Below, piece after piece: positions 6,067-62,645 of a DNA stretch of 64,000 bases (position 1 is its first letter; the number at the start of each line of letters is the position of its first letter). The notes beneath the pieces are model-generated. The model ran no database searches, had not been told where the DNA came from, and worked only from the letters and a program-made list of their open reading frames with translations. The stretch is taken from NCBI GenBank assembly GCA_002269645.1, contig NIVC01002815.1:1-64000 (forward strand). Reading direction: 5' to 3'. The stretch comes from Macrostomum lignano. Lineage: Eukaryota. The position numbers were made by a program, and so were the translations under genes.

Positions 6067-7629
6067 GGCGAAGCCTAGCAAAGCAACAGATGAGCTGGCG
6101 AGTATCGAATGAGAACCATAGGTCTTGTCCCCAGTATTTAGAGCCCGCTCTTAGATTTTTGGGAGCCGATAGGGGAAATGCAGGACATTCGTGGGAATTC
6201 AGCTCCCACCCGACCCCTATAATTGCATGCCTTCTCCGCTGATGTCAGATCAGAATTGGCAGCAGCCGACCAGCTCAGGCCTGCCATCACGGAATTTGCT
6301 TGACATTTTACATTTTATTCTATCCTTTTGAGCTTGTCTATCAACCAGGTTAGTCTATAAATTATTGATTTTATCCACCTGCCACTCTTGTCTTCACTAT
6401 AGAGACAAACAATGCCCCAGAACTGCCTAGGGTTTTTTCTATTGTATTTCCATCTTCCAGGAACTTTCAATGGACTCTTTTCCTCTCTCGTGTTCCCCTC
6501 ACTAGTCGTGCGCGATAAAGTTGGCTAAAAACGCAAGCTAAACTACTAAAATAATACTTGTACTTACCGAGGTAATGCAAGCAGATGCCCTGTTTCGATG
6601 CTTCAATGAAAACACTTCGCAGCGAAAAGCTTTTTGACTAGTAACTGGTTGATAAATCGAGTTCAGATGAGACTTATTCGAGTTTCCAGTTTGCCGTTGC
6701 TCCGTTTGACTTCTGGAGGAGCCGCCTGTATAGCGAGGCTTTCGGGACTCAAACCTCAGTGGCTCTTTACGTAACCCAAGGAGGCGAGGTGGGGCTCCGA
6801 CTGACTGACAGGCCAGCGCAGGGGGAGTTGACTGAGTCTATAATATGGGCTTGTTAGAGATTGCAATCTTGAGCCCTCCTGCTCAGTCGAATGCTCCGTG
6901 TGTTTGGTGCCTCCGATATATATTTGATGCTATGGATAAAGATATCCAGCCAAACACGACACGACCAACCGCGGAGAGGGAGGGAGAGAAAATACAAAGG
7001 CCGGCTTTTTGATATGCCAGAGACCTTGTGACAGGTGGATAAAGAAGGGCTCGGGGAAATATATGATATAAGCGCGGATTCCTTGCCGCGTGTGTAATGA
7101 GGGGGCAGCAGAAACACGATATGGCTAGCAGCTACCAAGCACGCGAGTGAAAGCTGCTTCTCCAATGTTGTGGACCAGGCTGAGCGCAAAAGCTCAATAT
7201 ATTCGAACAGAATTTTCTCTTGTCTGTTCAAAGCACTGGAGGGAGAAGGTTGGGGGGGCTACTTTCTGGGTCTTCTGCGTAGCTGTGGTTGGCTAGACTA
7301 CCTATTCTAACTTTACCTGTTCATGATAATACTAGGCAAAGCATGGAACAGGGCTCCTCTATGCAGAGGAGCGCCCTATTGGCTGAGAGGCCAATACATG
7401 CTTAAGCAACAAACTGGCAAAAGTTTAGTCAAAATCTCAAATTTCTAGTATCTAGTGACTTACTGTTTCACGTTGTCTTTATTGGCATTGTTTTCCTTTC
7501 AATAGGCCGTTAGTAATTAGAAAAGATAGGCAGGTGCAGTGGGATCGCGTGGATCGGAAAGGCTGAAACGCCAGATATGCTACTTAGGGCAGTCCCATAA
7601 AGACAGCTCCCATTTCCTAAGAAAAAACT

Positions 7630-8400
7630 CCCAAGGACAGCGCCCTTCCTCAGGGACAGTGTCCTTCCCCAAAGACAGCGCCATTCTTCAGGGACAGCGT
7701 CCTTCCCCAACGACAGCGCCCTTCCTCACAGTGTCCTTATACCCAAAGACAGCGCCCTCCTCAATGACAGTCCTTACCCAAAGACAGCGCCTTCCTCAGG
7801 GACTGCAGTGTCCTTACACAAAGACATCGCCATTCTTCAGGGACAGCTTCCTTCCCCAACGACAGCGCCCTTCCTCACAGTGTCCTTATACCCAAAGACA
7901 GCGCCCTCCTCAATGACAGTCCTTACCCAAAGACAGCGCCTTCCTCAGGGACTGCAGTGTCCTTACACAAAGACAGCGCCATTCTTCAGGGACAGCGTCC
8001 TTCCCCAACGACAGCGCCCTTCCTCAGGGACAGCGTCCTTCCCCAACGACAGCGCCCTTCCTCACAGTGTCCTTATACCCAAAGACAGCGCCCTCCTCAA
8101 TGACAGTCCTTACCCAAAGACAGCGCCATTCTTCAGGGACAGTGTCCTTCCCCCAAAGAAAGCGTCATTCCTCAGGGACAGTGTCCTTACCCAAAGACAG
8201 CGCCATTCCTCAGGGACAGTGTCCTTACCCAAGGAGAGTGTCCTTCCCCAAGGACAGCGCCACTCCTCAGGGACAGTGTCCTTCCCCAAGGACAGCGCCA
8301 TTCCTCAGGGACAGTGTCCTACCCAAGGAGAGTGTCCTTCCCCAAGGACAGCGCCACTCCTCAGGGACAGTGTCCTCCCCAAGGGAGAGCGCCCTTCCCA
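7630..8400. repeat. Minisatellite of ~19-bp subunits (GACAG(C/T)G(C/T)CCTTCC...) with a 149-bp higher-order repeat
   Basis: The variant GACTGCAGTGTCCTTACACAAAGAC recurs at 7801 and 7950. It explains the overlapping ORFs in 7510-8523. Confidence 0.93.
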
Positions 8401-11400
8401 CAGCATCTTGCATGTAAATTTTCCAGGTGGTTACAAATTACGAGTATACGAGTAGAGCACTTTCAAAAGATTCAATTTGCAACTGTTAATAGAAAGGTCC
8501 GTACAATGGTAACATACATGTAAATGCACTTAGTGGCTGAGTCATCTAAATCGTACAAAAAACCGCACCGCATGCGCATCAGATTAGGATTATTACAAGC
8601 TTATTAAAACTTTGTTAATGAAATAGCTTCGAGTGACTGTCGATTAAAGCTGGTAAAACCTAAGAGTTGTAAGGCTACTGCACTTGTTGCAAGGCAATAT
8701 TATGCGCTTTCTATTTGAATTGAAACTGTATCACTTGGCGTCTATACTGTAAGTTGTAAATTCATCATACAGAAGATGCAAATTAAAAAAAACTCCATTT
8801 CACAATGTGTAGAGCAAATGAGAAAAAAATCTAGACTAAAATGGCATCCTTTTAAAGGATATATTTTATTGCAATTTTCAAATGCCTTCCAGTCTATACG
8901 AGCGTATTAAGATACTCAGATATACCCCTATATTGCGTAAATATTTATATAGCCATGCGCATGCACTTGAAAATAAAAGAAACATATATGTAATCTACAA
9001 AAACTAAAAAACATAAATTTGTATACTTCGGCGACTTAAGCAGTAGGATTGGGGTAGAATTGGAGCTCAAAAAACCTCAGAAACTCGAGAGAGAAAACCT
9101 GCCGTCTCATCAGCAACTGAATTGAATGGCTGGGCAAGACTGGAGAGAGGGCAGGCAATGTGAGGCATAGAGAGAAGCTGTGTGTATTCCAAGCGAACCA
9201 AATAAATGCTGCACGCAGTGACTGCCAGTCTTTTGGTCGCCAAGCTGCTTCACAGACACTGTATAAGCTTAGTGAGCGATGGCAAGGGACAACACTAACT
9301 CGCTTTGAGTAGACAAATCTGTTACATTGTTCTCGAGTTTACTAGAACAAGAATTTCATGCATGACTTATATAGCTAGTTAACCATCCACCCCGCCCTCT
9401 ACCTACAAAATTGGTGCGTTCTTTCAATTGCTGCCTATCTCTGCTCCTTGTTTTTTGCTTGTTCAAATTGAGTTTGCATACACCGCAGAGTTGGATGATT
9501 TACGGCTACACACAATGCGTATAGTAGTAGTCTGTTGCAAGTCAATGCAGCTCGCAGTTTGCTTGCTGGAGCTTCTGGCTGAGTTCTACGAGCTACTTTT
9601 GGGTTGACAGACTGGCGTGCCTAAATAATAGACAGTAGTTTGAGAGGACATAGCATGCGCTCGTAATGACGCATCCTGCAAGTTAAGCAGAATTAGCCGT
9701 GGTTAGTACTACTCAGCTGTGTCTGCATGTGAGACACATGAGCAAGTGATGAATTAAGCTGAGCTGCAGTGGCAAAAACCGACTCCAGCGATCCCAACAG
9801 TCTCCAATACTGTATTTACGTACGAGTCGCTTACCAGTACAAAGCATTAATATTGGCTGCATACCTGACGAAATCTATTTGGCAGACGTATATCTGTGTG
9901 TTTTATTTCCTGTATCCTTCTCAATCTAATAACTAAACTATTGATTTGAATTCAAGGTTGAAATCAACACAAGCTAGGTGCTATAGGATCTAATTGGCAA
10001 CACCATTTACATCATTTTGCTAGAATGCTTTCTTATATATAATAAGTATTCATGCCCTATTCAAAACCAGATTCCAGCACTAAAATAACAATTTAGCTCG
10101 TAGAAGCATTCAACATATAGACTACTTATTATCAGTAGCATGCAAAACAATCACAAACTGAAACAAAAAACATGCAAATGAAGTCCAAATCAGTTTCCGG
10201 GATTAAATACCTGTTACAGTCTGACGAAAACAAACAGTATACATTTATTTTGTGCACTTAATTTAGTAAATTGAAATTCATACGCAAACTCATTATTAAT
10301 TGATTGGTGCAGGTTTTGCGAGATAAAAAGTTTATTTGCAAAAATACGGCAACGGCGACAAAGAAAGAGTTATATAGTTACACGCGTGTATTATAAAGAG
10401 CTTATAGGGTCAGTGTACACTTGTTCGACACTTGTCTTCTCCAGCATGGTTTGCTGTTAGTCGCAATATGCTAATTGCAGTTAAAAACAGATTCATATCA
10501 GTGCTGTTAGTGAAAGGCGCGCGTACAGACTTGAAAAAGATCATAAAGACTATATAACAGTTTAATACATTTATACACAATTGCGTAATCTCATGATACG
10601 AATTGACGCAGTTTTAGATCAAATAACAATTATGGATAAACTCTCTTAGGGTGTAATATTGAAGACTTATGTAAAAGACGGTGCAAGCTAAGCTAATATT
10701 TAGCAATAAAAACATCTCACAATCAATTACAAGCTTTTCGATTTTGAATTCACATATCGTGAACAAGTGCTACTCGTATGCTAGGCAAATAAGCGAATCA
10801 ATGTAAGCATAATCGCGTAATAGTTCTCAAAGCATTAGTGAGAATTAGCAACATGATTAGAGACCAAAAATGAGACTCCAAAAGCACTGAAAACATGGGC
10901 TTCTGAGTAGCTTGCAAGCTAAATAGTTATATACGATGCCGAATTACTTGCATTTTAATTTGATCAACAGAAATTTTATATATAGTATATATACAATAGT
11001 AATAAATACAAGTATATAGATTTTTCTAAGCACAGGCGCAAAGCTCTACTGCAAGAAGTAGGCATGCAAGACCAGTTTAGTGTAAAAAGCAGTAATAGTT
11101 ATATAATAGGCAATGTAAAGCAGTGGAGCAAAGTATGAAACAATCATTGAAAGTACATTTGTTGCAAGAATTTCAATCCGTTTGTACTAGCTCATTCAAC
11201 AGCAGATTTCAATCCTAAAGGTGAAAAGCAGCACATAAGACAGGAGCCACAGTAGTCAGTTTCGGGCGCTGATTGATGTACTGCTGGAGGCCACTTTATG
11301 CTGCAGAATGCATTAGCGAGATTAATAAACTTGTGAACAAACCTCGCACCAACCTTAAGCTCCGTTTGTAATTCGGAAGTCCACAAGGGTGAGATATCGA

Positions 11401-12689: not shown

Positions 12690-14063
12690 CTACGCCAACT
12701 GAGAATCTCTAGACCGCTCGTAGGGCAAAAACGAATACGTGATATTCATTCGATAGCACTTCACAATCAGTTTGTACACAGTGTGCCTGCTTTTAATTTG
12801 AACGCTCATAGCCGTGAAGAATGCCAAGAAGAATAGAATGCCGGACACAAGAGTCAAGGCTTCGTAGCCAGTCAGAACCAGCGGAGTCGGCGGCGGTTGG
12901 TGCGGATGCTGCGGCGGCAGAGGTTGCTGCTTTGAAGCGGCTTCCGAGGCCGCGCCAGGCGACGCAGAAGCAGACGAAGCAATAGAAGAGGAAGAAGCAG
13001 AAGTCACCAGCTGCTGCTGCTGAACAGGCCGGTCCCGATCGCGCACAAAGCACATGACCGTGATCACAGCGCAAGCGGTCATGACTAGCAGACAGAGCAA
13101 GAAGATGAGATGCAACACTCGGTCTCCTCGCGACACCCGAGGCATTCTCCAGCCGCCGTTAGCGGCCAAGCTGAATTTCGCCCGCCGCCTGTACTCATAA
13201 TTACACAGCTCGCATCGCGGCGGCGACCTGCCGTTTCGTCGGCGACCGCCTCGATGCCGACGGCGACGTTCGGCTTCAGCGGCCGGATCGAGGGAGCGGC
13301 GGATCCTGGCTGAGGCTTCAATCCATTTGGCTAGGCAGGCCGGGTGCACGTGCTGCAGGGTGCCGGAGCAGCGGCATGGCGACAGCAGCAGCCGGTTGTT
13401 CGCGCCGCTGACGCTGGCCGCGCCGCCACCGCTGCTGGCCTCGTCGCCTGGCAGATGGCAGATCCGGCAAAACGGCTTAGAGGCGCGGCCGCCCCCGCCC
13501 TGGCCTAGTAGCGACTCGTAGCTGGAGTATTCCGAATCATCCGGTAGAGGATATTTCGGGCGGCCAGTTGGGAAGCTGCCGCCGGCGCAGCCGCCGCTAG
13601 TGCCAGCAATGGCTACAGACGGCGTTACAGTTGGCTGCTTTGACTGCTGCTCCAGCAGCTGCATCTGTTGGCAACCGGCCGAAGAGGAACAGCAATTAAT
13701 AATTAATGACTCAGGCCAGGCCGTTGCTGTGGAAACAGAGATACCGGTGGCAGCAGTGGTCTCAGCAGACGAAGATTGACCAGCCTCAAGCGAAGACGGC
13801 ATCGGCGCAATGACCGACATGGGGAGTACAACAGATGCAGAAGCGGCATTGCGAACTGACGCCCCAATAGCTGCAGTTTCATTGATGTCATCAACGTGCT
13901 GCTGCGGATGCTGTCGGTGTTGGTTGCGACTGCTGCCACTTCGATCACGCCGGCGCTGCCTGCTGCGGTGACGGTGGCGACCAAGACTGCTACTGCTGCG
14001 GCTGCTGTCGCTGCCACTACTGCTAGAGTAGGTCTCGGAGCCACTGCTGCTGATATCGGCCAT
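12690..14063 (-). CDS. MARCH-family RING-CH (C4HC3) transmembrane E3 ubiquitin ligase, 457 aa, single exon
   Basis: CRICH...[23 protein letters not shown]...CELC, followed by two TM helices ([24 protein letters not shown]; [20 protein letters not shown]). Ser-rich N-terminus. Orthology within the MARCH family is not assignable. Confidence 0.9.
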
Positions 14064-34800: not shown

Positions 34801-37800
34801 GTATGCAAAATTAAGCATTTCTTAAAAAACAAAGCTGAAAGATACTGTTAAACATCTCAACGTTCTTGGGTGCTGTAAACAGGTAAGTTGCGGTCTAAAA
34901 TTAAGTACAGTTTAAGTCAGAGTACTGAGAGCGCCAGATAAAGTGCCAGTTAGGCCAAAAGCCGATTTTTGTACATTGCATCAGTCAGGGACTTTCTCTG
35001 ACAAAGCTTTCTGGTGCATTTACAAAGACAAAGTTTTGACCGCAACCGGCCTCGAAGTGAGAAAACGGCTTTAAACTTCGGCCTGATTGGCACTTTATAA
35101 ATCGAGTCTTGTTACTCAAGGTTGTCTTAGCCTATGCTGTGGCTTGCTCGCACAGTCTCGATGCCTAGCGGTTTGCTCATATTTGTTTCATAGCTAAGCA
35201 TTCTGAACGGAAGGATACTAGCCGTTATCAGCCCATCTCCTTAAAACTGAATTCCCAAGAGTTGAGGAGCCGCTGGTCCTCCGGCATGCTTCTCAACTGA
35301 ATTTGTGCGATAAAACCGACACGAGGTCTCGGAAAATGTGGGGATAAAAAGAAATTCAACCGCCGTCTTTTTCTATTGGAAGCGCATTTTACTGCCTTAC
35401 TGTTTACACATCTAGCATATACCCTTTTTATCCATGCGACTCGCTTCTGCGCATGACTGAATGATAAAAAGTTCACAAATCGGATTCTGTCCTTGGGAAA
35501 TCTAAGCACCGACCTTGACTATGCTCTCCGGAAATCAAATTTTATAGCTTTCATCAAAGTTCCTGGGGTCATTTTTCCTGCTACTTTAACAATTACTTGG
35601 CATAGCCGTGGTTTTTTCTACGAACTCGTACTTCTAATGGTACGGCAAAAATAATGAACTGAGTGATTATGGTTGTTAGATGTAATAATTTGATATAGAC
35701 TTTTATCTATGGCTTGACCGCCACTAGCATTACAGTACAACTTGAATGAGCGGTGCCTCGTTCTAAGGCCACAATCAATAAAAGTGATATTGAGAGCTGC
35801 TCAACTGGAGCACTTAAGAAATTACCGAGTTAGCTAAAGGCTACATCAAAATTGGTGTTATAGTGTCTGTGCATCCAGAACCAACACTGGTGACGAGGAT
35901 GGCGACGATTCCAATCGAACCCCCGGAGACAGACGTGCCTGCCGAGGTCAGCAGATGGCTACAGCGATTCGAGGCTATAGCCAAAGTCAACAAGTGGAAC
36001 GACGACGTGCTGAAGTATGCGTTCATAGCACAACTGGGAAAGAAGGCGTTCAACCTTCTGGCTGACGCTTCACTGCCAGCAAAGCCAGAGGAAAAGACCT
36101 TCGATCAGCTGAAGACGCTACTAACAAACGAAACGAAAGCATCGAAGTCGGGACTGGCCTATAGATACGCTTTCCACCACATGAAGCAGGAAAGCGGAGA
36201 AGACACGTCGGCCTATGCTAGGAGACTTCGACAAGCCGCGGACAACTGTGAATTCACGGACCTAAACGACAGGTTGCGCGACCAGTTTGTGTTTGGCTTG
36301 TTGAACAAAGACATCGTGAGGAAACTGCTAAGTGAAAAACTCGCAGATCTCACCTGGGAGAGGGTGACGTCCGTGGCAAGCGCATGCGAAGCCGTAGCGC
36401 GTGGTGAAAAACAGATGAGCAGCAGCGAAATTTTATCGGTCAAGAGGGCGGATCGACCGCGTTTGCGGATCGACAGAACGATCGCAAAGCGTGGCAGCCA
36501 ACCGGGTACGGCAAGTGGAATCAACAAAGCCATCGCGACCAAACAAAATGTTTCTGCTGTGGCAAGGATGGACACCGCAAGGACGTCTGCCAGCACCGTT
36601 CAAAGACCTGCCTGAATTGCGGAAAGACTGGCCATCTGAAAGCTGTGTGTAAGTCTAATACATCAAGACCTGCTCAAGGGTCAAGACAGACTGTCAAGGT
36701 GAGAGCGATCGAACCGCAGAAAGATTCTTCAGGACCTGTAGGAGCACAGGACAGCATCTTCTCCGTAAATGGCAGCTGTGAGGAGCCCAGCAGGCGCAGG
36801 ATAACAAGGCTTCAGCTGGTCAATGGGGCCAATCTTCATATGATTATGGACACGGGATCCGTCTCATCATTTGTACCTCTAAAGGTGTATCAAGGCCTTC
36901 CGTTAAAATCCAATTTAAGACCGACGGCCCGACGATTTACAGCATACCAAGGAGATCCGGTGCGTGTTTTAGGAGAAGTTACTGTCAGAGTAGAGCGTGG
37001 CGGCGCAGTAGCAAACCTGCCATTGTTTGTCGTAGACCACAGAGATGTGGAGCCCATATATGGTTTGGACTGGATTGCAGAGCTGGAGCCGGAGCTTTAT
37101 GTCGCCATAACCCAAGGTGGTAATGCTGACGCCACAGAAGAAAGGCAATCAAGTCGCATGTCTCCAGTCGACACCGTGAAGGCGTCACTATCGATCAGGC
37201 CAGGCGCAAAACCTGTTTTCTGCAAGCCAAGACCGATTCCATATGGTATTCAAGAAGACGTAAAGAACGAGCTACGAAGAATGGAATCTGAAGGACAGTT
37301 GGAGAAAGTGCAATCGAGCGAATGGGCCACGCCTATAGTGTGTGTCAGAAAGCAATCTGGAAGTATCAGGATTTGTGGCGACTATAAGATAACACTGAAC
37401 CCAGTCTTGAAAGACATGGTATCGACAACGCCATCGATAGATGAAGTGATGTCCAGATTGGGTCGAGCCCGGAAATTCTCCACGCTAGATCTCACAAATG
37501 CATACTTGCAGGTACCAGTCGACGCCGAGACAAGTCAGATACAAACTTGGAGCACTCCCTTTGGCCTGTTTCGTCCAACCGCATGGGCTTTTGGAGTAAA
37601 ACAAGCACCCGCTATCTTCCAGTCACATATGGATAAACTCCTGCTAAACCTCGACGGCGTGATATCCTACCAGGACGATATCCTCATCTGGGGCGAAAGT
37701 CAGACTGATCACGACGAAAGGCTCAACACCGTAATGAGAATCCTGGAAAACAATGGACTTCGCATAAATGCTGACAAGTCTGTACTAAACAAGTCGTCAA

Positions 37801-40800
37801 TACGATTCCTGGGCTACGAGATCAGTGCAGATGGAACTTGCCCTCTAAAGGAGAAAGTGGAAGCCATTGCCGGATTAAAAGAGCCAAGCGACCTCAAACA
37901 ACTACAGGCATTCTTGGGAATGGTCGATTTCTATGGACGGTGCATTCCTAACTTGGCTACGTTAAAAGAGTCATTGACCAATCTAACCAGGTCAGGTGTG
38001 CGATGGACCTGGGGAAGGCAAGAACAGAAGGCATTTAACACAATCAAGGAAAGATTGCTCAACGCCGGACTTCTAAAGTCATTCGATCCAGCTGACAATG
38101 TTATACTTACGACTGATGCATCACCGGTGGGACTGGGAGCCGTGTTGGAGCAGTCGTCCGGTCCTGTTCTATTTATCTCCAAGACGTTGACACAGGCTGA
38201 GAGAAATTATGCACAGATCGAAAGAGAGGCGCTAGCCATAGTCTGGGCGGTTAAACGCCTCCACAAATATCTGCTAGGACGCAAGTTCGTGCTCAGGACG
38301 GACCATCAACCACTGAAATTTTTGTTCAACCCGGGAAAGGCCTTGTCTACGGTTGCTGCTGCTAGGCTACAGCGATGGGCGATCACACTCATGGAGTATG
38401 GTTACGTCATCGAGTATAAGCGTTCCGAGGAGATCCCTGTCGCTGATGCCCTATCTCGATTGAATAATAGTGCCGCGGAGAGCGAACAATTCGACGTCAA
38501 CTCGATTCAGGACAGTCTACTTGATATACCAGTTGACAAGCAGCGGCTTAGGCGCACGTCAATGCTTGATCAGGAAATGCGACGACTGTTTGCGCTCGTC
38601 AAGCATGGCTGGACAGCCCGAGGAATCAAGGAGCTACCAACATACGCTCGAACTCGTGACGAACTGGTGATCGAGAACGGTCTTCTTTACAGAGGAATAC
38701 GCCTGCTGATCCCGGAGGAGGAGCGACAAAGAGTTCTTCAACTATTGCACGACGGCCACATAGGCGCGGACAAGATGAAATCCATCGCCAGACAATGCGT
38801 ATGGTGGCCGGGAATAGACGCTGATGTCACTAGGCATACCAAGCAATGCGTCGCTTGTCAGACAAATAAAGACCATGGAGCATCAATCCAATGGGCATCT
38901 TGGCCAGAGGAAAGCGAAAAGTGGTGCCGTGTGCACGCAGACTACGCTGGACCGTTTAAGGGCAACAAGTACCTGCTCGTAATAGTCGATGCCTACAGCA
39001 AATGGGCAGAATTACATGTTACGCAGTCAACTACATCGGCAGAAACTATCCGACGTTTCCGAAGAACGTTCTCGCAAGAAGGTGTTCCCGCAACATTGGT
39101 TACTGACAATGGTCCACAATTCACTTCAGTGGAGATGGAGGGCTGGCTCAAAGGAAACGGATGCAGACACGTGCTCACGCCTCCGTACCACCCACGATCA
39201 AACGGCCTTGCGGAAAGGTTTGTGAGAGACATAAAGAACCATGTGGCGGCATCAGGAGGCGAAGACGATCTACAAACCAGTGTCGACCGCTTCCTTCTAC
39301 AGTACAGGAACTCCCGTCACTCCACGACAGGAAGGGCACCTGCAGAGTTAATGCGAGGACATCTGCTTCGGACGGCAACGTTGACCTTGGCCAAAGAACC
39401 GGTGTGGGTAAAGACATACAGGAACGAAACCGAGAAATGGAAGCCCGGTGAAATCGTTGCTAGAGAAGGTAAGAAAATTGTGGGCGTACAATTGGAAGAC
39501 GGAAAACACGGCCGATATCATCTGGAGCAGACAAAGCCAAGGATTCCCGTTGAAACTAGCGAGCCTCAGGAGAGCTCACAGCAAGGTGTTGCTGACCAGA
39601 ACACAAGTAACCCGATAGAAGAGCCTGGACAACCTGAAAGAGGTCATCGCTGCCAGCGCACGCGGAAGGCACCCGACAGACTGAACTACTCAACTTTAGG
39701 AAGCCCGGATTGCGCGTGAACTGGAGTGAACTCGGACAGTTGCAGAAACTATCGGGAAGGAGTGTTAGATGTATTAATTTGATATAGACTTTTATCTATG
39801 GCTTGACCGCCACTAGAATTACAGTACAACTTGAATGAGCGGTGCCTCGTTCTAAGGCCACAATCAATAAAAGTGATATTGAGAGCTGCTCAACTGGAGC
39901 ACTTAAGAAATTACCGAGTTAGCTAAAGGCTACATCAAAATTGGTGTTATAGTGTCTGTGCATCCAGAACCAACAATGGTTAAGACGTCATACTGGCTTA
40001 TGTACTTTTGCTGAGAAGCCATTGGTCAACTGAAAATCTATGGTACAAAACTATTCTCCTCGTTTCGGTGTGCAAAGTAAAATATTGGCAAAGACAGTTT
40101 CAGAGCACATCGCAGTCTTTATGTAGCATTTCCCACTCAATTTGGTCCTGTGAGCAGTTACTTTAGTCCTGAATTTTAAAAGCACACACATCAAGCATCT
40201 ATCTTGATAATGCAACACAATGCGGAACAGTGCAACATAACAGAAGAGCCATCGTGCTGAATAGTCAGTTCCAAAAGTTACTCAACTCAGAGAATAGGTA
40301 CGCCAGCGATGCATCGGTGGAGGTAGCGCATCGTTTTACGATGCTATCCTCCGAATTTTACTGCAGTTACCGCATCTGTCGCCTCTACAATTCTCCACTT
40401 CCCGGGGAGGGAAGCTCTTCGCTACCTTTAACTTCCGTTATCAAGCAAACATGGTAAGATTGACAAGACGTACAGGCTTAGTGAGATACTTTTGAAAATG
40501 CTGAAACACCTTGGATACTGTGACTCTGTCTATTGACAATATTTAATGCCATTTAAATTTTCCAACAACTTATCGAGTGGAATAGCGGGTATATTGTATC
40601 TGTCTCCATCCCGCAGCAATGCTCTCAGCCTGCTGGCTCGCTAAACAAGTGCGTCGGCTCCTTTCACTCCCAACTGGTTTGTCGCTACGATCTGACTGAT
40701 AAATTCTCGCCCAACAGTCACCGGTCGCAGACTTCTGCTGCCGCTGCCGCTGCTGCTTCCTCTGGCACTTCCGCTGGTACCGAAACCGGAAACTACCTTG

Positions 40801-48316: not shown

Positions 48317-49556
48317 TTTTCTAGCTGTGGTGGCTGTTAGCTGGTAACTGCAATCTTGTTATTATTATCATTCAGTAAGCCCTGTCTCTTAACTTATTAT
48401 TCAATTTTCTTCCAAGTCAACATGACCTTCTCTTTCTATCCTAAATAATAATTGAGATCCAGTTAAGCCTCAATATTGTTTTGTTTATCTAAAACGGATT
48501 TTAGCATTCACCTACCTGCTTAGCTTGTAATTTTATCAGAATTCCGGGTGATGAATTCTTTAGAGCAGCAGTTGATTTTCTGCGAGCGAAACTATTTCCC
48601 CTGATTTTATGTGTAACCTTGTTAATATCTGTTCATTACAATCGTATTTTAACTTGATCAGACCGCTAAGATGCTGCGATGGATAAAGTTAGTGCGAAGG
48701 TGTTATTTACTTTTTAGTGTATGTGAAAAATGATTTTAACTTAGCACAAATATAAAACTGAAAAAAACCTCTCCTTCACATTCACTTGGGAGTTGAAGAA
48801 AACGAGAAAACGATTTGATTGATCTTAAACTTTTGTTGGTTTAAACTTGTTTCATTTTTGCTGGCATTTCAAGTTCTGTTTGCTGCCTAAAATTGTTTTC
48901 GAAATTGTTCGCTGCCATTTTCATAATCATTGATGCCTGTATGCCCTCCGTGTACATGTACCGTGGTTGAGCCAGTTACCCTAAAATATTGTAGCTCTTT
49001 AGCATTCAGTATGCATAAGCTCAAAATAATAATATAATAATTGATTACACCTGCCCTAATGGCCAGATGTGCAACCAACAGCTCAGCCTCAGCTGTATCT
49101 GAAGGCTGTGTACGGCTGTTCAGTCCAAGGACTGGGGGTCGCCACACACACCCTCAATTGTACCATGACCTTTGTGCCCGCTGGGCACTATTCTTGCCTT
49201 TTAATGCCATAGACTACATTTAAGCCCGCTTGCAGGAGTCAAACTTACTTTAATGCAAATTAGCGGGCAGTTAATGACATTAAACCCCCGATTATCTATG
49301 CCAAACTTACTTTAATGCAAATTAGCGGGCACGTAATGTCATTAACTGCCCGCTAATTTTGTCCCACTTTGTCAAGGACAAAAATGTCTAAAATGACACA
49401 GAGGGCGCCGTTAGGCGCCCGAGGATTTCTCATTAACGCCCGCAAAGCATGGGTATTACTATTATTGTGCCATAGACATTTGGCATAATAACGGCGCCCT
49501 ATGATTTTCCCATTAACGCCCTTAAAGCATGGGTATTAATGTACCTAAGGTACTAT

Positions 49557-49687
49557 TACCCCAGCTAATTCTGGTACCCATTTTACAGCTGGGTGAACTG
49601 AAGCAATGCAGAGTTAAGTGTCTTACTCAAGGACACAAATTGTTCCGAGTGGGTCGAGAGACGCTCTAACCACTAGGCTATAGCCCC
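49557..49687 (-). mobile_element. tRNA-derived SINE with Meta-domain-like core
   Basis: Minus strand: GGGGCTATAGCCTAGTGGTTAGAGCG (A-box-like head), then GTGTCCTTGAGTAAGACACTTAAC...CACCCAGCTGTAAAATGGGTACCAG. Confidence 0.6.
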
Positions 49688-50230
49688 TTCATGGAATTTT
49701 CACAGAACTACAGTGAGCTTGTCACACGGTTTTTACGAGCGTAATTTGCATTCATATCGAAACTCGCCTAAATGTTGTCCCAAACTGAAATTCTTCCTGG
49801 ACTTTGTGATTTAAACACTGTCCATTGATCTACCGGTCATTTTTGTAGATTTTATCCAGTACACTGCTCCAGCAGATGTTGCAGTTTTGTTTTTGATGCG
49901 TTGAAAAAATTAAGCCAGAGACAACAGAGAACTCTATTCAATATTGCGATGCTGCGCTTTTAAATTGTCAGGTTTGGGACAGCTGTGCCAGAATTCGCAC
50001 AGCTCGGCGCTGGGGTGACTAACAAAGGTGGTTATCTCAGTTTTCCACATCAACTATAGCGGACTAGGGTGGCTGTGCGGGGGAAGGATAAGATGTACCT
50101 TTCTGTTTGCTAGTTTCAGTTGTAGAAAAGTAGTATATCAGTATTTTTGCAGATTAGTCTGTCTCAAGTCTCTCAGGCTCCACCCTTGGCTTCTAAATTA
50201 AAAAGTCCAGTTTTGCAGTTGTCAGTCCAG

Positions 50231-50937
50231 TCAGATCTTGCACTGGTAGTCGCAGTACTTCATAGACTCCCAGCAGGGGTTCTGGCAGCGCCAGTCGTTC
50301 TTCCCGCAGCCAAGTTCCTTCTTGCACAACTTGTAGTTCTCCTCGCAGCACTTGTTGCACCGCGCCTCTTCTGGGTGCTTCTCGTAGCAGTAGAGCTGCG
50401 GCTGCTCGGCTGAGAACGAGGAGCGCTTGTTGACTCCGCCGACTGCTCCGGCGATGGCGATTGCCATGAGCAGACTCAGACCACTGTGGGTGATGAGAAA
50501 AGCGTTAGTTTAGCTTTTACAGCCGTGTTATGGCTGACAATCTGTGTGCTAGATAAGCTGTCAAAATGGCATTAGTGAAATTGGCACTTACAAAATCTGG
50601 TTGACGGACATGCCGAATTTGCTGTAGCAAGATTACGTCTGACAAATTGGTTTGAGACCGAACGGTAGGTTGCACCTGAAAACTTCAGAGGCGGCGGGTC
50701 CTGCCTTCGGTGCCTGCTTAGCTGATTTATTGATGCAAGGGCGGGCCTCTCCCCTTGCTTGAGTCTATTGCTGAACCAATCGAAGGCTTCGGCCTATGGC
50801 GTGAGTAGTGCCGATACTCGCGTACTGAAGTGCACCTACTTTAGTTAGGAATTTCTGTGACTGATAAACGGTGACAATCTTTTCACGGCTGGTGAGCGCT
50901 TTGTAACCGAACTGACGTTTAATCCTGCTTACTTCAT
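50231..50937 (-). CDS. Secreted 10-Cys peptide precursor, 85 aa. Exons 50933-50937 and 50231-50483
   Basis: gccATGAA|gtaagc donor joins cccacag|T in phase 2, giving MNGLSLLMAIAIAGAVGG-VNKR-SSFSAEQPQLYCYEKHPEEARCNKCCEENYKLCKKELGCGKNDWRCQNPCWESMKYCDYQCKI. GC-rich coding-like composition. Confidence 0.8.
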
Positions 50938-51265
50938 GGCGAGTTCAACCAACTTACATGTACGTCATCACTCGAAGCGCAAGAGCAGTTTTTCATTATC
51001 AATTGTATTTTATATCAATTTCAAAAAGTATTCATACCTTTATCAAATTTTTTTTATTAATTTCAAATATTATTTTAACAGTATCTAATATCTTTATTTC
51101 ATTATCCAATAATATTTACGCCAATATCAAATACAGCTTCAGGAAAAATTGTTGCATACTTTAGCTCGTAGAATCATCACTACGAGCACATCACTAACAG
51201 TAGTTTCTTAGGGAAATTTAAATAACCTTACAAGTTTTGAGAGTTGCAATTCGAGTGTATGAAAT

Positions 51266-52693
51266 TCATATCAGTTTAAAGCAGTAGTACTCGATGATCA
51301 GATAGCTCGTATATGGCGGGCACTTTGTCCCCAACAAACTCTCGTCGGCGGTGGCCTGGCAGCTCCGTTTGCCTTGACAGAGTCGTCGGATCTTATGCAC
51401 AGCGTCGGGGTCCGTGCACCACTGCCTGAGGTACAGATGGCACTGCCACTGGTTCTGGCGCCTGCCATAGAATACGTAGCTGACCACGACTTGGTGCCCC
51501 CTTGGACACCGTAGCTGAATAGTCTCTCCTGGGCAGAACAGAGCTTCTTGAATTTGGCCTGAGTTACATTATATGGGTGATCAGTACATGATACAAATTA
51601 CTATGCATGTACACCCAGGAACACTAAACTGCTACCCTATCACACAATGAGTGATCTGGAGCTCTCTTGAAGGTCAGCTGCGTATTATACGCAGTCATCT
51701 CTGCTTAACTTTGCTGTATTCAATTAGCAAACGACTAAAAGGCCTTATAAATACAATAATACAAAAGTACTTAAATAACTATGCGCTATTATTTCATTGA
51801 TAAATTAACCAATTTCATAAAGTACTTTTGATTGAATGGCAAAGTACGTACGACATAGCCTACAGTTGTGCATGAAGAACTAAGTATTCGCAGGAGGGCT
51901 GCGGGCACCCTGCAGCGCAACGCCTTCGACGACATCATCCAACAACCAGCGTCGAGGCAATTCTGCCTATTCCCCTGCCTCCTGAGCACATGCAAGTTCT
52001 CCAATACTGTATGCAGACGTTCTCATACACGCTCACACAGGGTGTACAGCAGCCCCTACTTTCTAATCGCCAGGCATGTACACTCTCTGTGACCTTGGGG
52101 GTAGGACCTCATGGGTATGAATCGTACGACAACCCCTAGCACCATTATTGGTGCACAAGCCCGAATGAATGTAGCCGCCCACTAAATCAAACCAATTGGG
52201 TTGTGGGCCTGTGGCGCAAGCTGCTCTGCCAACCGCCCCTATACACTTGTTAAGTGGACTGGTTTGTGCGGCGAAAGTGCACAAACCGGCTTTAGTGCCC
52301 AGCGCGTTGATTGTACATCGCCGCCTGCCCCCCCCCCCTTGGGTGGCAGGGGTGTTTTTAAACCCCCGTCGCGCTCTACTGGCGGCTCACTTTGCCTTCT
52401 CGCAGTGAGTTCGTGTTTTTATTGCTTTTGTTGCTGGAAGCACTAACTGTTTATATTAAGCCGTTACCTGTTTACCCAACGTTGATTTTATTCAGATTGA
52501 TGAAGTACAACTTCAAATACTTCAGATTGGATAAAGTACCTTAACTGCTACCGAACGTCGCGGAGTAGTCATGACTCATATGCTGAAAACATGAGTAATG
52601 TATATATATAGCTAATCTTGTAAACTCAAGTTACTCACCAGCACTGAAGCCCGTTAGAAATGCTGAAATTGCAATAACTGCATGCAGCCTCAT
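51266..52693 (-). CDS. Secreted single-domain SUEL/rhamnose-binding-type (Gal_lectin) protein, 115 aa. Exons 52639-52693 and 51266-51558
   Basis: Signal-peptide exon MRLHAVIAISAFLTGFSAG|gtgagt joins in phase 1 to CPGETIQLRC..VVVSYVFYGR..C..C..CQGKRSC..LLGTKC...YLIIEYYC; 8 Cys in SUEL spacing. Confidence 0.85.
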
Positions 52694-54478: not shown

Positions 54479-57400
54479 CTACATTTCTTCTGCACCAGCT
54501 ACAGCAGCGGTTTCAACGTCATCCTGCTCAGATTTGTTGTCAGGCAATTTGGAGCTGACGTCACCCAGTTGACAATTTTCCTCTGCATTTTCACTCGGCT
54601 GCTCAGCACAATTTCCGGTCGTGTTGCCGAAGCGGCGTTTAACTAGCAGATAGGCGGCCAGCAGCAGGGCGAAGTAAGGCAGCCTGGCCAGCATGGGGAT
54701 GCCGTTAAACAGAATCCGAAGTCGCGTCCTGTCGTACAGCAGGCAGTTGCGTTCTCCAGCTGAGCCGCTGGTGGCTACCAGGCACGCGGATTCATAAATA
54801 CGACCGCAGAAGCCGCCCATGATGGAGGCTGAAAGGTCATCAAGTGCTTTCAAGTGCTTTTGTTCAATTCAATTTGATTCTTGTTCTTCATCGGAAGCCT
54901 AGGCGATTTTAGACACAGAATGGGGCTGAGGACGGGCCAGAATATTTGCGGTTCTAGGTTCTAGCGGGTCCTTGTTAAAGGGTACTTGTGCTTAGGCAAG
55001 TCACCTGTGTTGTAGAATGAATAAGCCAGTCAGTCTGCAAGTTTGTAGGCGAAACTCTCAAGCTCTCAAACTCTCCACGCTCTAACTTATGTATCATACG
55101 CTCGTATATTGTACTGCGATCGATAGCTAAGAGGTGTACACACAATTACGCACACGCATAGAGTAGCGATCGACACAACAACCTGCTGTTGTCACATCGT
55201 ACAGGACAAAACTTTGTTTGTGAGCGCGATTGTTAAGAAAAATGAATGCGAAATTTCTAACCAGTTGGTTGTAACTCTGACAATCAATGATGCGCCCAGA
55301 CATCAATTGCGCTGGCGAATCCAGTGGGTTCCACTCGACATTTAGGGACATTAATTCCTGGGACCCTCTAAGCCATAGCCATAGGCAAGTCTCAATATGG
55401 AAGACTTGCACAATATGGTGTAAGTCTCAAAAATTTTCAAGTACCCGATGGGTTCAAGCATTTCACTACTCATTAACATGCATCTGGGGTGCATGTTATT
55501 GCTTAGTTTTAGTCATTTGTGAAAAAATATTCATTGTCTATACCTCCAAAACCATATAGACAATCTACCAATGATGCACGGACCATTGAGAAACAATGGT
55601 AGGTTGTGCATATGGTTTTGGTATATGGCTTCGCCACTCGTGAAGAATTAATCATTGTCTACCCCCAAAACTATATGCACAGAAACATTGTCTCATGAAT
55701 GTATGTTTAATAGCCTTGAATAATGATTTCGAAGCGTTGAATAACTAGCGTACGGCATGGGACATTGATGTTTGTCATGGAGACTTAAGAAAATAAGAAG
55801 AAAATAAAGCTTAGGACAGCTTTTTATGAGTTTTTGCATTACCCTCGTACTGTGCTTTTTTCACAAAAGTTTATCCATAAAGTAAAAAAATATCGATAGG
55901 GTTGTATGTATGGAGCCTTCTATTCCTATAGTTTAGTTGAAAATATCTCAGCAATGCAATTAAGTATTACTAATATGTTACCGGCAAGACTGAAGAACAG
56001 CGAGATAATCCCGACACCCATGGCCTCGTCGTCCTTTGAGTCTGTCACTCTAAAAATCGTACGGTTCCTCTTTTGATTATTGCCTAATAAATGCCACAGC
56101 ATCAAATTTTTGCAACATGCGCACCTCATCACTAGTAAGAACCATGACACATACGACAGGCCGTCAACAAAATGTGCGATGAATTTCAGCACGGAGAAGG
56201 CATAGACCATGTCGCATACACCGTAGCAACTGCCTGCCAGTGCAGTGCTGCTGACAAGGCCTTGTTCAGCGGAGTCCGTTAAACTGTAGTTTACAAATGC
56301 CTGTTCTAAACAGTTGCAGTTGCTAAACACCATCTCCGTAGGCTGGCATCGGAAATAAGTTATAATGAGTAATTACTTAATAAAAGCAATTGATTAGCAG
56401 AAACAGATCTTCGATAATAACAAAAGAATTTGTACCTGGTGTGTCCCGTTCTCAGCAACTGCTACAGACATTGTCCCTGTACACCCAGCATGACACGGTG
56501 ACATGTATAAGTTTCCATCAGCTCCGCACACTGGCAGATTGTTCAAGAGAGTGGCATCGCATCTGCACTTTGCAGCGCAGTCGGAGACGCTACTGACGTT
56601 GCTGTCCATTGTTTCTGTGAGGCTGTGACGGCGGTTATCGTCTTACGAGCTTTATGGAAATAAAGCCGTTTTGCACTTTTTGGCAAAAATGAATGCCGAT
56701 GTACGAATCAACGAACGGTTAATGTTGCCTTTTTTATAAATACACATGGATATATGAAATGAGCCATAGGATCAAAGTTCTAGACTCGATGATTTCACTA
56801 ACTTTCCTTTAACGTACCTGGGATCATTCTTACGTGTACAGGTAGTGGGAACCAGTACCCTGCATGATTGAAAAATCTAGCGTGATTACGTTACACATCT
56901 ACAGCGATGCATTGGTAACTTTGGATGGATACATCCAGCACAATACCTTGATATTTTAGCATGTGAATATATCTGAGTGCACATCTTGTTCGGTGTTTTC
57001 TGAACGATGGCATTGAAATGCATTGACAAATCGATAGCACAAATAATCGAGATGAAAATATGTAATCTTACACGTCCGTATTGATCCTTTCGGAGGGACA
57101 GTCCAGAAAGAATGCTGGCGAATTCAGTACGGTGGTCACCAGAAAGATACCACAGATGAGTCGCATCATTCCAACCACGTCAAGCTGCAAGCGCGACACC
57201 AAGTAGCCTCCAGCTAGTGTTGCCAGTGCGGTTGGCAGCGCATAGGTGATGCCAACGTACTGTCCTGCTGCCGAGGGCAATACGTTAAAGTAGTTCTCGT
57301 AGTACTTGACAATAAACAACACTTCGAGACCTGAACCGAGCAAACTGACCACGCAGGACAGCATGACCAGCATGAGGATCGCATTGGTCATAGTGCGCTT

Positions 57401-58519
57401 CACGGCGAGTGACAAGTCGCGAAGACTGTGAAGGAATTTTGCGCAATTCCCGGCCCCGCGCGGCTGCGATTCGCACGACCTGTGGCGACTCATACGGCGC
57501 ACTATATTTGCCTCGTTTAGCGGAGTCTCAGGATGAGAGGCGTCCGGATCGTCTTCAGCATCACAGGGATCGTCTTTCTGCTCATCCGGTCTTTCCGAGC
57601 AGCAGAACGCGTCTTCAAGTTGGCGGGGAAACAGCAGCATGGGAAAGCCAAGCAGGCTGGTAAGCAGGCCGAGACTGAGAAACCCCAGCCACCAGTTGCC
57701 AATCCACATGCTGTCGGATTCACGCAGACCAGATTCGCCAAATGATTCGTGCAGTGCTAAAAACTGCCCGATCAAGTAATAGCCCAGCATTGGTGATATT
57801 GATCGAGCAGTGATGACCAGGCCGATGTAGATTGGCGACCGAGACGGGGTGGCTGAGTCCTCGACCATTGTGAATAGCACTGACCAAGAGGGGGCAGAAG
57901 CGGCGCCCTGAACGATCCCGACAATCATAAAGATGGCAAAGACTACTTTGCGGGCTTCAACTTGATTGGTCGCGGATGATTCCGATGTTGTTGAACCCAA
58001 CCTCGGATACTTGTTTGACTCTGAGGATTTGTTGAACATGCCTGTTGAGTTCAAATCGAGGATTTTTCCACGGCACAATAGGTCGTTGTTTTCAGCAGCT
58101 AATGCTTTCAGCTGCTCGCTGTCGTTCTTCCAGCCGAGCTGTTGATCCGTGAGAGTCAAATAGCGTGCAATCTCGGCGTTCGAGTACTTCGGGCCGTAGA
58201 TAAAATATGGAAGTGCGTAGGCAGCCGTGGACAGACCCATAACAACTGCGCCCAGGCCCAAAATGCGAGGCCTGTGACCTCGGTTGCCATAGAAACTAAC
58301 TAGCGTCACAGTTGCAGCGAAGCCAATATCATTCGCCACTATGATTCGCCCCGTGTCCTCTGAATCGAAACCAAAGCGCCGCTCCAGAGTTGTCGTCATG
58401 CTCGATAAAAACACGTAGGATGCGTTGTAGGCGATGCCTGCTGAGATGCTGACTAACAGAAAGCACAGCAACGACCGAATTTGTCCGGCGCTTCTGAAAC
58501 TGCTTTCGATTTCTGACAT
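54479..58519 (-). CDS. SLCO: SLCO/OATP organic anion transporter, ~756-770 aa. Exons 57072-58519, (56818-56859 candidate), 56436-56622, 56125-56342, 55982-56049, 54479-54828
   Basis: TTLERRFG, DIG..V..VSFYGNRGHRPRILGLG, DSMWIGNWWLGF, extracellular Kazal-like domain (PVCGADGNLYMSPCHAGC) and CLLYD. All junction phases are consistent. Confidence 0.93.
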
Positions 58520-61204: not shown

Positions 61205-61850
61205 ATCAAGGAATCGTAAAGGACATTGTGCTACAAATAATAATATTGACACTCGTAAAGACAAATAAATTTATAAGCAATCCATATAATCTTATCTCTC
61301 CTATTGAACTGTCCATGCTCAATTCTCCTAAACCCTCGCATTAACTCGCTCGAGTCGGCAGTCTTCGAAGAGATCTATTACTCTAAATTATAAAATCACA
61401 TAGCCATAAACTTTTTGCAATAGCCTCAGACATGAGTTGCGCCCGGAGCGCCTCTGAATGGCTGAAAAGCTGAGAGAAGATCGGAGAGGGAGAGAAGAGG
61501 GGCAGCCACTCAGGCGTTACAGTCCTGCCATTTCTATCTTTATCTGTCGAAGAAGTCAGACGGAGAAAGTATAATAATAAGCCCAAGCAATGCGCAGACG
61601 AACAAGGGGCCGCAGAAAAAGGAAAGGACGCGCAGAGACCATTGGCCCAGAAGTTGATGGGCTTAGCTAATCAAATTACGACGTCTCCACTTTTGAAAGA
61701 AATTTCTCCTCATTAATTTATAGACGCGAAAGCCACCAAGCAGAGGATAAAGACCGCTTCTTAAGCCTGAGAAGAAGAGAACAAAACAGCCTCTTCTTAC
61801 AGCAGCCAAGTGCAGCAGCAGAAAGCTTGGCTTCCAAAATTTCGATCGAA

Positions 61851-62645
61851 ATGAAAGCTTTTAGTGTTCGGTTGTTGTTGTTGTTGCTGCTTCTGCTGGC
61901 AGTATGGGAAAGCAGGGCATGCTACCTAAATTTGGCGATGAGCGGCAGCGGTAGCAGAGGCAGCGGCGTCTCAAAAAGTATCGAAGATTTGGCAGAGTCT
62001 TCTCCGATTGTGCTCACTGGACATGTGCTCAATACAACCGCGAGTGGCTCAGGCAGTGGCTCAAGGAGAAGCTACTCAGCCGAAATTCAAGTGCTCGAGG
62101 TGCTGAAGGGTAATGGATTGTTGCCCCTTAGCAACCGAAGCGCCTTTGATGATACCAATGATCACACAGTGGTGATTGACGAATACGGAGATCCAGTTAG
62201 CTGCTTGAGCGAAGTTTTTCAAGATGACTGGTTGATATTTTTCCTGTCAAAGTCGGGCTCCAGGCTCATGGCTTTTTATGCCAGACCATCTGCCGCGACA
62301 GCCCAGTTGACAGAATCGAATTTGGCAAGAGCTGCGACGGCCTTGGGTGAGCGATTCCGAGATCACTGCTTTATTGCACAGTTGAAGCAAAGACTATATG
62401 TTAACTATAACTCATTATAGACTGCTGAGCGACATTTTACCCTTCATTAATGAGCTCAGTAAGAAAAAAACATGGGAATTTTCTCCCCCACAATTCAGGC
62501 TGGTTCAGCTGGTCAAGTTGGACGGCCTGCAGCGGCAGCTGCGGCCTCGCTGGCATCAGACAGAGAGTCAGAAATTGCGCCGGACCGCCTTGCGACTACG
62601 GGGACGCCAAACAGACTCGTCAGTGCAATAGGTGGCCTTGCGAAG
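61851..62645 (+). CDS. Secreted protein with agrin N-terminal (NtA) domain followed by a TSP1 repeat; 3'-incomplete. Exons 61851-62346 and 62499-62645
   Basis: Signal peptide MKAFSVRLLLLLLLLLAVWESRA; NtA-like IEDLAESSPIVLTGHV, YSAEIQVLEVLKG, VIDEYGDPVSC, WLIFFL; phase-1 exon GWFSWSSWTACSGSCG..GIRQRVRNC...QC..WPC. Confidence 0.82.

Follow-up and report, generated by a model that had tools for sequence, protein, structure and literature searches.

The subject of this analysis is a candidate gene on the minus strand of a 64,000-nucleotide stretch of Macrostomum lignano DNA (the window), taken from contig NIVC01002815.1 of assembly GCA_002269645.1 (the Mlig_3_7 genome). The preferred reading, held here at a probability of about 0.6, is that the candidate is an independent two-exon gene for a secreted peptide with ten cysteines, and that the likeness of this peptide to the nemertean neurotoxin B-IV, from which the original prediction had argued for a B-toxin-like fold outside the ribbon worms, is convergent. 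The gene is absent from the GenBank annotation, and is probably misfused to its neighbour in a UniProt model. On sequence comparison, the peptide and the annotated paralogue Mlig017896 make up a small family, seen so far in M. lignano only.

The coding frame and its paralogue

Re-reading and translation of the minus strand recovered the open reading frame (ORF), the splice sites and the Lys-Arg (KR) dipeptide of the original prediction, with MNGLSLLMAIAIAGAVGGVNKR followed by the 63-amino acid (aa) peptide as the spliced product. The proposed pattern C-X9-C-X2-CC-X6-C-X5-C-X6-C-X3-C-X6-C-X3-C is exact in this peptide, whose cysteines lie at positions 12, 22, 25, 26, 33, 39, 46, 50, 57 and 61 (spacings of 9, 2, 0, 6, 5, 6, 3, 6 and 3), and the caveat that the peptide is neutral also stands, with 10 K/R against 10 D/E giving a net charge of 0. 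The 83-codon frame of exon 2 is uninterrupted. Its GC content is 0.583, as against 0.47 in the intron and 0.28 and 0.44 in the flanks, and its GC content at third codon positions (GC3) is 0.845 in frame, whereas the two alternative frames reach 0.47 and 0.42; accepted exons elsewhere in the window have GC3 values of 0.60-0.74. The GC3 bias, the existence of a paralogue that keeps all ten cysteines, and the superposition of seven of the eight B-IV cysteines (see below) place the ORF beyond chance, and it is clearly coding. An 88-aa ORF rich in Leu, Ala and Val (50147-50413, plus strand) runs antisense to the peptide exon, where it has probably arisen as a side effect of the marked GC3 bias on the minus strand.

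Upstream of the Cys-rich domain, the best 12-residue Kyte-Doolittle mean is 2.4-2.6, compared with 2.7 in the canonical signal peptide of the paralogue (MSGHYLTILIALTAILAASVEA). The pre-protein would enter the endoplasmic reticulum, where the signal peptide would be removed near the junction of AVGG and V. The KR dipeptide, put forward earlier as a processing site, is present after the hydrophobic core, but pro-peptide cleavage at this position is unproven given that KR is missing from the paralogue. A Pfam scan of the peptide and its paralogue found no domain.

A word-indexed protein search gave no match with the peptide as query, and Mlig017896 only with the family alignment. An exhaustive phmmer search, covering 1.84 billion representative proteins, matched three proteins. 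These include PAA84244.1 (BOX15_Mlig017896g3; E 5.8e-5), a 96-aa hypothetical protein of M. lignano that has two near-identical copies in this species, as well as UniProt A0A1I8G1Y5, a 354-aa M. lignano model whose last 83 aa are 100% identical to exon 2. The g1, g2 and g3 members of Mlig017896 are PAA58971.1, PAA84373.1 and PAA84244.1, with UniProt entries A0A267GFV7 and A0A267GEB2. Identity between the window peptide and Mlig017896 is 33-34% (pairwise E 1e-10), and all ten cysteines are aligned, as are the invariant W, E, M, K, Y, D, Q and I of the C-terminal motif. The frame common to both is C-X9-C-X2-CC-X6-C-Xn-C-Xn-C-X3-C-X6-C-X3-C, ending in CWE(S/R)MKYCD(Y/F)QC(K/G)I; the C-terminal end reads CWERMKYCDFQCGI in Mlig017896 and CWESMKYCDYQCKI in the window peptide.

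The Mlig017896 gene opens with a 14-nucleotide (nt) first coding exon, ATGTCTGGACATTA, followed by the donor GTAAGT, a phase-2 intron that interrupts the signal-peptide sequence, and the acceptor CTTACAG before an exonic C. The intron is 552 nt long in one copy and 1063 nt in a second, the first 200 nt being 98.5% identical; in both loci (L003, 4225-4445, and L004) it holds a long (CTGT)n microsatellite followed by (AATT)- or (CCAA)-type repeats. Given the 14-nt micro-exon and phase-2 intron of Mlig017896, the micro-exon architecture appears to be a trait of the family, and the tiny first exon proposed for the window gene finds an echo in it, since both candidates in the window repeat the arrangement. 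The Mlig genes in GenBank were built by assembling RNA-seq reads on the genome and calling ORFs with TransDecoder (PMC5730564), and Mlig017896 is therefore transcript-supported. It is not mentioned in the M. lignano expression papers covered, text and supplements included, and a literature search on secreted Cys-rich proteins of Macrostomum yielded adhesion work only.

The two groups thus defined share the ten-cysteine frame bar loop lengths, the predicted helix topology, an N-terminal signal peptide (predicted in the window gene) and, with either candidate first exon of the window gene, the gene structure. In Mlig017896, however, a 15-residue Gln/Pro-rich spacer without KR follows the signal peptide, the loop is six residues longer, and the net charge is +3 rather than 0. 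Mlig017896 adjoins an unrelated P450 gene, whereas the window gene adjoins an OATP gene, and the former is annotated and transcript-supported while the latter is neither in the GenBank annotation. Homologues beyond Mlig017896, including intermediates in other phyla, were not detected by the exhaustive phmmer search.

A metagenomic protein of 147 aa (E 6.3e-5; JGI metagenome 3300028647, contig Ga0272412_1068694, 616-1059) was weighed as a possible third member but not accepted. This protein has no counterparts of C22, C25, C50 and C61, has a lipobox-like signal, and is encoded on a compact, bacterial-looking contig. It contains two repeats like the C33-C57 segment of the flatworm peptide (LGCG.N.(W/F)RC.N..W..M..C), and matches Mlig017896 more weakly, in the same register; chance, a common mini-domain or transfer may lie behind the likeness.

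Predicted fold and the likeness to neurotoxin B-IV

For the 63-aa sequence, AlphaFold2 predicts a short N-terminal helix and two longer helices (helix 1, 20-37; helix 2, 44-62) joined by a loop at 38-43, with a mean predicted local distance difference test (pLDDT) score of 77 and three of the five models above 70. The mature region of Mlig017896 is modelled at a pLDDT of 64, with a short helix at the first cysteine, a helix at 24-41, a loop and a helix at 52-72. The helix-loop-helix foreseen in the original prediction is therefore predicted for both the peptide and its 33%-identical paralogue, and both models have the two antiparallel helices and short loop by which the CS-alpha/alpha fold is defined.

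The register of the cysteines fits this topology, and suggests, with the models, a helical hairpin held by ladder-type staples. On helix 1, C22, C26 and C33 lie within 40 degrees of one another, and on helix 2, C46, C50, C57 and C61 lie within 60 degrees. The index sums of nested cysteines are constant (22+61 = 26+57 = 33+50 = 83), as they are in Mlig017896 (99/99/99) and in B-IV (64/64/64), and all six residues inserted in Mlig017896 fall between the fifth and seventh cysteines (C5 and C7), which is the predicted loop. From the helix faces, the constant sums and the loop-only insertions, we infer a pairing in which the ten cysteines would oxidise to five disulfides: three ladder staples (C22-C61, C26-C57 and C33-C50) would lock the two antiparallel helices, C39-C46 would close the loop, and C12-C25 would tie down the short N-terminal helix. 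The product would be a compact, protease-resistant extracellular peptide with a net charge of 0.

The B-IV sequence and cysteine pattern on which the comparison was first based are correct, being identical to PDB 1VIB. Like B-IV and the nemertide beta peptides, the flatworm peptide would be a secreted molecule of ~55-63 residues with two antiparallel helices (predicted here), and its one-face cysteines are spaced i, i+4, i+11 on helix 1 and i, i+4, i+11, i+15 on helix 2, in a constant antiparallel register. With one loop gap, seven of the eight B-IV cysteines can be superposed, which only 9 of 20000 random cysteine placements do as well, although this null ignores helical periodicity. Compared with the eight-cysteine B-IV frame, C-X3-C-X6-C-X2-C-X10-C-X3-C-X6-C-X3-C, the flatworm peptide lacks the fourth cysteine and has three extra, for ten in total. 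B-IV has four disulfides where five are presumed here, and its C26 is without a counterpart in the window peptide, which has in turn a loop cysteine, a CC doublet and an additional N-terminal helix with a cysteine. B-IV of Cerebratulus lacteus is also strongly basic and nemertean, whereas the window peptide is neutral and belongs to the flatworm phylum.

These resemblances raise the question of whether the peptide is a true but very divergent nemertean B-neurotoxin (nemertide beta), and thus a helical-hairpin toxin of old spiralian origin that targets channels of excitable membranes. The superposable cysteines, the identical C-X3-C-X6-C-X3-C of the second helix, the shared antiparallel register and the predicted hairpin all speak for common descent, but the similarity searches do not. 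BLASTP returned E values of 20 and 60, hhalign of the family alignment against B-IV gave a probability of 0.27%, and phmmer and hmmsearch against PDB sequences did not find 1VIB, their sole match being eL42 at E 0.25. Foldseek, likewise, did not retrieve 1VIB with either model, and its PDB matches for the two models were all generic hairpins without significance (MexA, EncB, PsbZ and ATP synthase c). The part of the earlier claim concerning a helical hairpin stands as a structure prediction; the part concerning family kinship finds no support in the sequence, profile or Foldseek searches.

Residues outside the cysteines point the same way. The Y and L that make CNKCCEENYKLC resemble CENNCRKKYDLC, which had served as an alignment cue, are not kept in Mlig017896 (CYTCCQRQRLTC), so that the non-cysteine identities with B-IV are lost in the paralogue. 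Arg-17 is essential in B-IV, where even replacement by Lys abolishes activity (PMC6410017), and under the alignment of the original prediction this position corresponds to Glu in the window peptide and Gln in Mlig017896, while position 25 is a Lys in the window peptide. In the case of the aromatic residue at B-IV position 30, the loop Trp of the window peptide is out of register, and is absent from Mlig017896. Net charge is 0 in the window peptide and +3 in Mlig017896, as against +10 in B-IV. Nor did the exhaustive search find the intermediates in other phyla that would bridge the two groups. Shared ancestry with the B-neurotoxins is therefore regarded as very improbable.

The i, i+4, i+11 spacing is what any helix stapled along one face needs, and hairpins with ladder staples are on record from plants, scorpions and marine animals alike, with unrelated sequences (bioRxiv 10.1101/2020.05.26.118075). 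Since the spacing is generic and stapled hairpins occur in unrelated lineages, the economical reading is that the likeness to B-IV is one of convergent geometry, with homology not detectable at the level of sequence. The plant alpha-hairpinins and vicilin-buried peptides and the scorpion kappa-KTx (CS-alpha/alpha) toxins provide other instances of a helix-loop-helix stapled by CX3C-type motifs with ladder connectivity. Such stapled helix-loop-helix peptides recur in unrelated lineages with varied roles, among them channel block, antimicrobial action and protease inhibition, and the disulfides structurally described for this fold number 0, 2 or 4 only (bioRxiv 10.1101/2020.05.26.118075). The plant and scorpion peptides differ in that they have 23-55 residues, two disulfides (four in B-IV) and no sequence relationship to the flatworm peptide, which would have three inter-helix staples, two further bridges and a third short helix.

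First exon, gene boundaries and expression

The splice signals of the window gene (Table 1) agree with the cis-acceptor motif CAG and the donor motif GT[G/A]AG of M. lignano (PMC8629364). Because an in-frame TAA lies at 50512-50510 and no ATG occurs until 50467, the GLSLL segment is translatable only after splicing. Among all ATG..GT pairs enumerated in 50900-51100, four are in frame into exon 2, and two of the four have a GT[A/G]AG donor. One is the 5-nt exon of the original prediction, ATGAA followed by GTAAGC, which does exist in frame but is not unique, as the 11-nt exon ATGACGTACAT, followed by GTAAGT and situated 25 nt upstream, is in frame as well. Both are phase 2, and the candidate gene models have a phase-2 intron of ~450-475 nt.

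The 11-nt exon is slightly more likely than the 5-nt exon (about 55:35), for four reasons: it begins at the first ATG downstream of TATAAAA, its GTAAGT donor is nearer the consensus, its length is nearer the 14-nt exon of the paralogue, and the choice of the 5-nt exon leaves a four-codon upstream ORF and an unused GTAAGT in the 5' untranslated region. With the 5-nt choice, two upstream ATGs are left in this region. The 300 nt around TATAAAA are only 28% GC, and a chance match is possible. DNA alignment of the upstream region with the paralogue loci found no conserved promoter or exon-1 sequence, and as these regions are unalignable, homology cannot pick the first exon. In either model the micro-exon (ATG 50968 or ATG 50937) would give the ATG and one to three codons, and exon 2 would supply the rest of the signal peptide and a domain of 63-67 residues.

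A different start is conceivable if no cis first exon exists and the acceptor at 50484 instead takes a spliced leader, perhaps as the downstream member of an operon with the neighbouring OATP/SUEL gene, translation then beginning at Met 50467 (MAIAIAGAVGG...). Spliced-leader trans-splicing affects ~30% of M. lignano genes, and same-strand genes less than 1 kb apart are operon candidates (PMC8629364); the OATP/SUEL-to-peptide gap is ~780 nt, and ATG 50467 opens a 78-aa ORF. The spliced leader itself ends in ATG (PMC8629364), but joined to 50483 this codon falls outside the peptide frame and starts an overlapping ORF of 97 codons, and the acceptor CCACAG does not match the [T/C]TNCAG trans-splice motif (PMC8629364). 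In addition, the annotated first exon of Mlig017896 is joined in cis, it is among conserved genes and not lineage-specific ones that trans-splicing is enriched (PMC8629364), and a start at Met 50467 would leave only a short hydrophobic core. Trans-splicing is accordingly rated as improbable at this acceptor.

The same neighbour, on the same strand and separated from the peptide exon by ~780 nt, raises the possibility that the exon is not a separate gene but the C-terminal exon of the OATP/SUEL gene, with the hydrophobic stretch serving as a linker or membrane segment. The frame is compatible with such a fusion, and the published ML2-annotation model A0A1I8G1Y5 makes exactly this OATP/SUEL-to-exon-2 join. 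To do so, however, the model splices out of the SUEL exon at a poor donor, TT/GTTGGG at 51335, and resumes at 50483. If translation instead continues to the stop of the SUEL exon itself, that exon encodes a complete SUEL_Lectin domain (profile positions 1-80 of 80, 58 bits), whereas the fused model retains positions 1-60 of 80 (35.8 bits). The two AATAAA signals that follow the SUEL stop suggest that the neighbouring gene ends before the peptide gene starts. Mlig017896, moreover, is a stand-alone, transcript-based gene for a 96-aa protein beside an unrelated P450, and the ML2 annotation puts its exon, too, into a 1135-aa retroelement chimera. The truncated SUEL domain, the AATAAA signals after the lectin stop and the Mlig017896 chimera in the same annotation indicate that the fused UniProt model is probably a gene-finder artefact, and an exon shared with the OATP/SUEL gene is very hard to credit.

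Against the reading of the locus as an independent gene for a secreted, convergently folded peptide stand several points. A 15-billion-protein collection, queried by exact look-up, contains none of 12 products that the locus could yield (variants of the cis exon, other starts, the spliced-leader frame and partial forms), and the 78-aa ORF matches no recorded gene. No AATAAA or ATTAAA occurs within 700 nt 3' of the stop codon, where there are weak variants only, from +267. The family consists of two paralogue groups, too few for a test of the fold by covariation or by the ratio of non-synonymous to synonymous substitution rates (dN/dS), and the two Mlig017896 copies differ by four synonymous and two non-synonymous codons, which is no less than the divergence of their introns. 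The structure models, finally, were built from single sequences.

Some of these observations would be expected if the intact frame belonged to a locus with little or no expression, as a young, decaying or conditionally expressed duplicate. The absence of the locus from the transcript-derived GenBank annotation and from all exact look-ups, and the want of a canonical poly(A) signal in the 700 nt that follow the stop, favour this explanation, as does the recent polyploidy of M. lignano, whose genome is highly redundant (PMC5730564). Yet the 83-codon frame is unbroken and has a very strong third-position bias, the ten cysteines and C-terminal motif are kept at only 33% identity to Mlig017896, and all the splice signals (donors, branch point, acceptor) are intact. 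Transcripts with low expression or an overlap with repeats were filtered from the GenBank set (PMC5730564), so that absence from it is weak evidence; when 49500-51300 was compared with the window by blastn, no repeat came up to account for filtering of the gene. A silent duplicate is considered unlikely, and an independent two-exon gene is retained as the preferred reading.

Genomic surroundings, possible function and significance

Table 1. Features of the peptide gene and of the surrounding window (a slash marks a splice junction)
Feature	Position	Strand	Details
Peptide ORF, ATG to stop	50231-50467	minus	78 aa, opens at ATG 50467
Exon 2	50231..50483	minus	last base of split codon, most of signal peptide, Cys-rich domain, TGA stop 50233-50231
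Cys-rich domain, 63 aa	50234..50422	minus	SSFSAEQ...YQCKI, 10 Cys; predicted helices 8-15, 20-37, 44-62
Predicted signal-peptide hydrophobic core	50435..50482	minus	GLSLLMAIAIAGAVGG, then VNKR; aligns to paralogue signal peptide
3' splice site	50484..50509	minus	ACTAAC branch-point-like motif 50509-50504, pyrimidine-rich tract, CAG ending 50484 (...CCCACAG)
Candidate first coding exon, 5 nt	50933..50937	minus	ATGAA; donor GAA/GTAAGC, GT 50932-50931; product MNGLSLL...
Candidate first coding exon, 11 nt	50958..50968	minus	ATGACGTACAT; donor CAT/GTAAGT, GT 50957-50956; product MTYIGLSLL...
TATAAAA, possible TATA box	51008..51014	minus	~40 nt 5' of first candidate ATG (motif scan)
Two AATAAA signals	51098-51093 and 51058-51053	minus	3' of neighbour's SUEL stop
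SUEL-lectin exon, upstream neighbour	51266..51558	minus	own stop 51268-51266; outside peptide gene
Noggin-domain ORF	4948-6081	minus	long Arg-rich C-terminal extension
Ty3/gypsy-type pol	36648-39719	plus	retrotransposon
OATP transporter exon and Kazal exon	57071-58519 (OATP); 56397-56609 (Kazal)	minus	
NtA-domain ORF	61830-62420	plus	signal peptide; agrin NtA-like domain

The Noggin, gypsy pol, OATP/Kazal, SUEL and NtA ORFs of the window (Table 1) fit an animal genome. On the minus strand, the OATP gene (54479-58519) is followed by an exon with a complete SUEL/rhamnose-binding lectin domain and its own stop, the two being joined in UniProt A0A1I8G1Y5. It would be unusual for a lectin domain to follow the final membrane segment of an OATP, so the SUEL exon may be a separate gene or an alternative 3' exon; a protein search with the OATP exon gave no match at E <= 1e-30. 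The plus strand carries, at 35866-39719, an apparently intact Ty3/gypsy-type coding region, in which a gag-like ORF is followed by a 1023-aa pol ORF with protease, reverse transcriptase, RNase H and integrase domains. A single-exon RINGv (MARCH-type) gene lies at 12690-14063 on the minus strand, and an identical 457-aa protein is encoded on a second contig, NIVC01005188.1, a duplicate that fits the known large-scale duplication of the M. lignano DV1 assembly. At 7500-8460 there are tandem coding-like units with long ORFs on both strands, PEEWRC and SLGKD motifs recurring in the minus-strand translation. Rfam had no match in the window, and tBLASTn of the peptide against the window did not find a second copy.

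With respect to function, small, neutral or acidic, secreted, all-helical and disulfide-locked signalling peptides of aquatic organisms are known in Aplysia attractin and the Euplotes pheromones, which differ from the flatworm peptide in cysteine number and spacing and are functional analogies only. For a rigid, disulfide-rich and uncharged peptide, specific binding is likelier than membrane disruption, and the molecule would most probably bind a receptor, a channel or another such surface target on a partner, prey or microbe, and not lyse membranes. A role in defence or predation and a role in reproduction or signalling are tentative suggestions of equal standing, an antimicrobial role is a good deal less probable than either, and other or structural roles would take up what remains. 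That the ten-cysteine peptides are toxins or pheromones with a five-disulfide hairpin, and the first such peptides from any free-living flatworm, whether as ancient B-toxin kin or as an independent scaffold, is a long shot.

Lineage-restricted Cys-rich orphans are common in invertebrate genomes, and for this reason the finding is a modest one while expression and activity remain predicted. Three lessons for annotation follow from the locus: an apparently real gene for a small secreted peptide was missed by GenBank, it was probably misfused to OATP/SUEL in UniProt, and micro first exons inside signal peptides, which appear to be a feature of this family, are poorly handled by gene finders. The locus adds one more, unannotated gene to a tiny family and, on the predicted models, represents a five-disulfide variant of a known fold class. 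The count of five disulfides in a helical hairpin, if true, is one not structurally described according to one survey (bioRxiv 10.1101/2020.05.26.118075). If expressed and folded as predicted, the peptide would represent a flatworm-specific, five-disulfide version of the recurrent stapled helical-hairpin scaffold, which is of interest to toxin and peptide-engineering researchers, and would be a candidate gland, seminal-fluid or defence product of a model flatworm.

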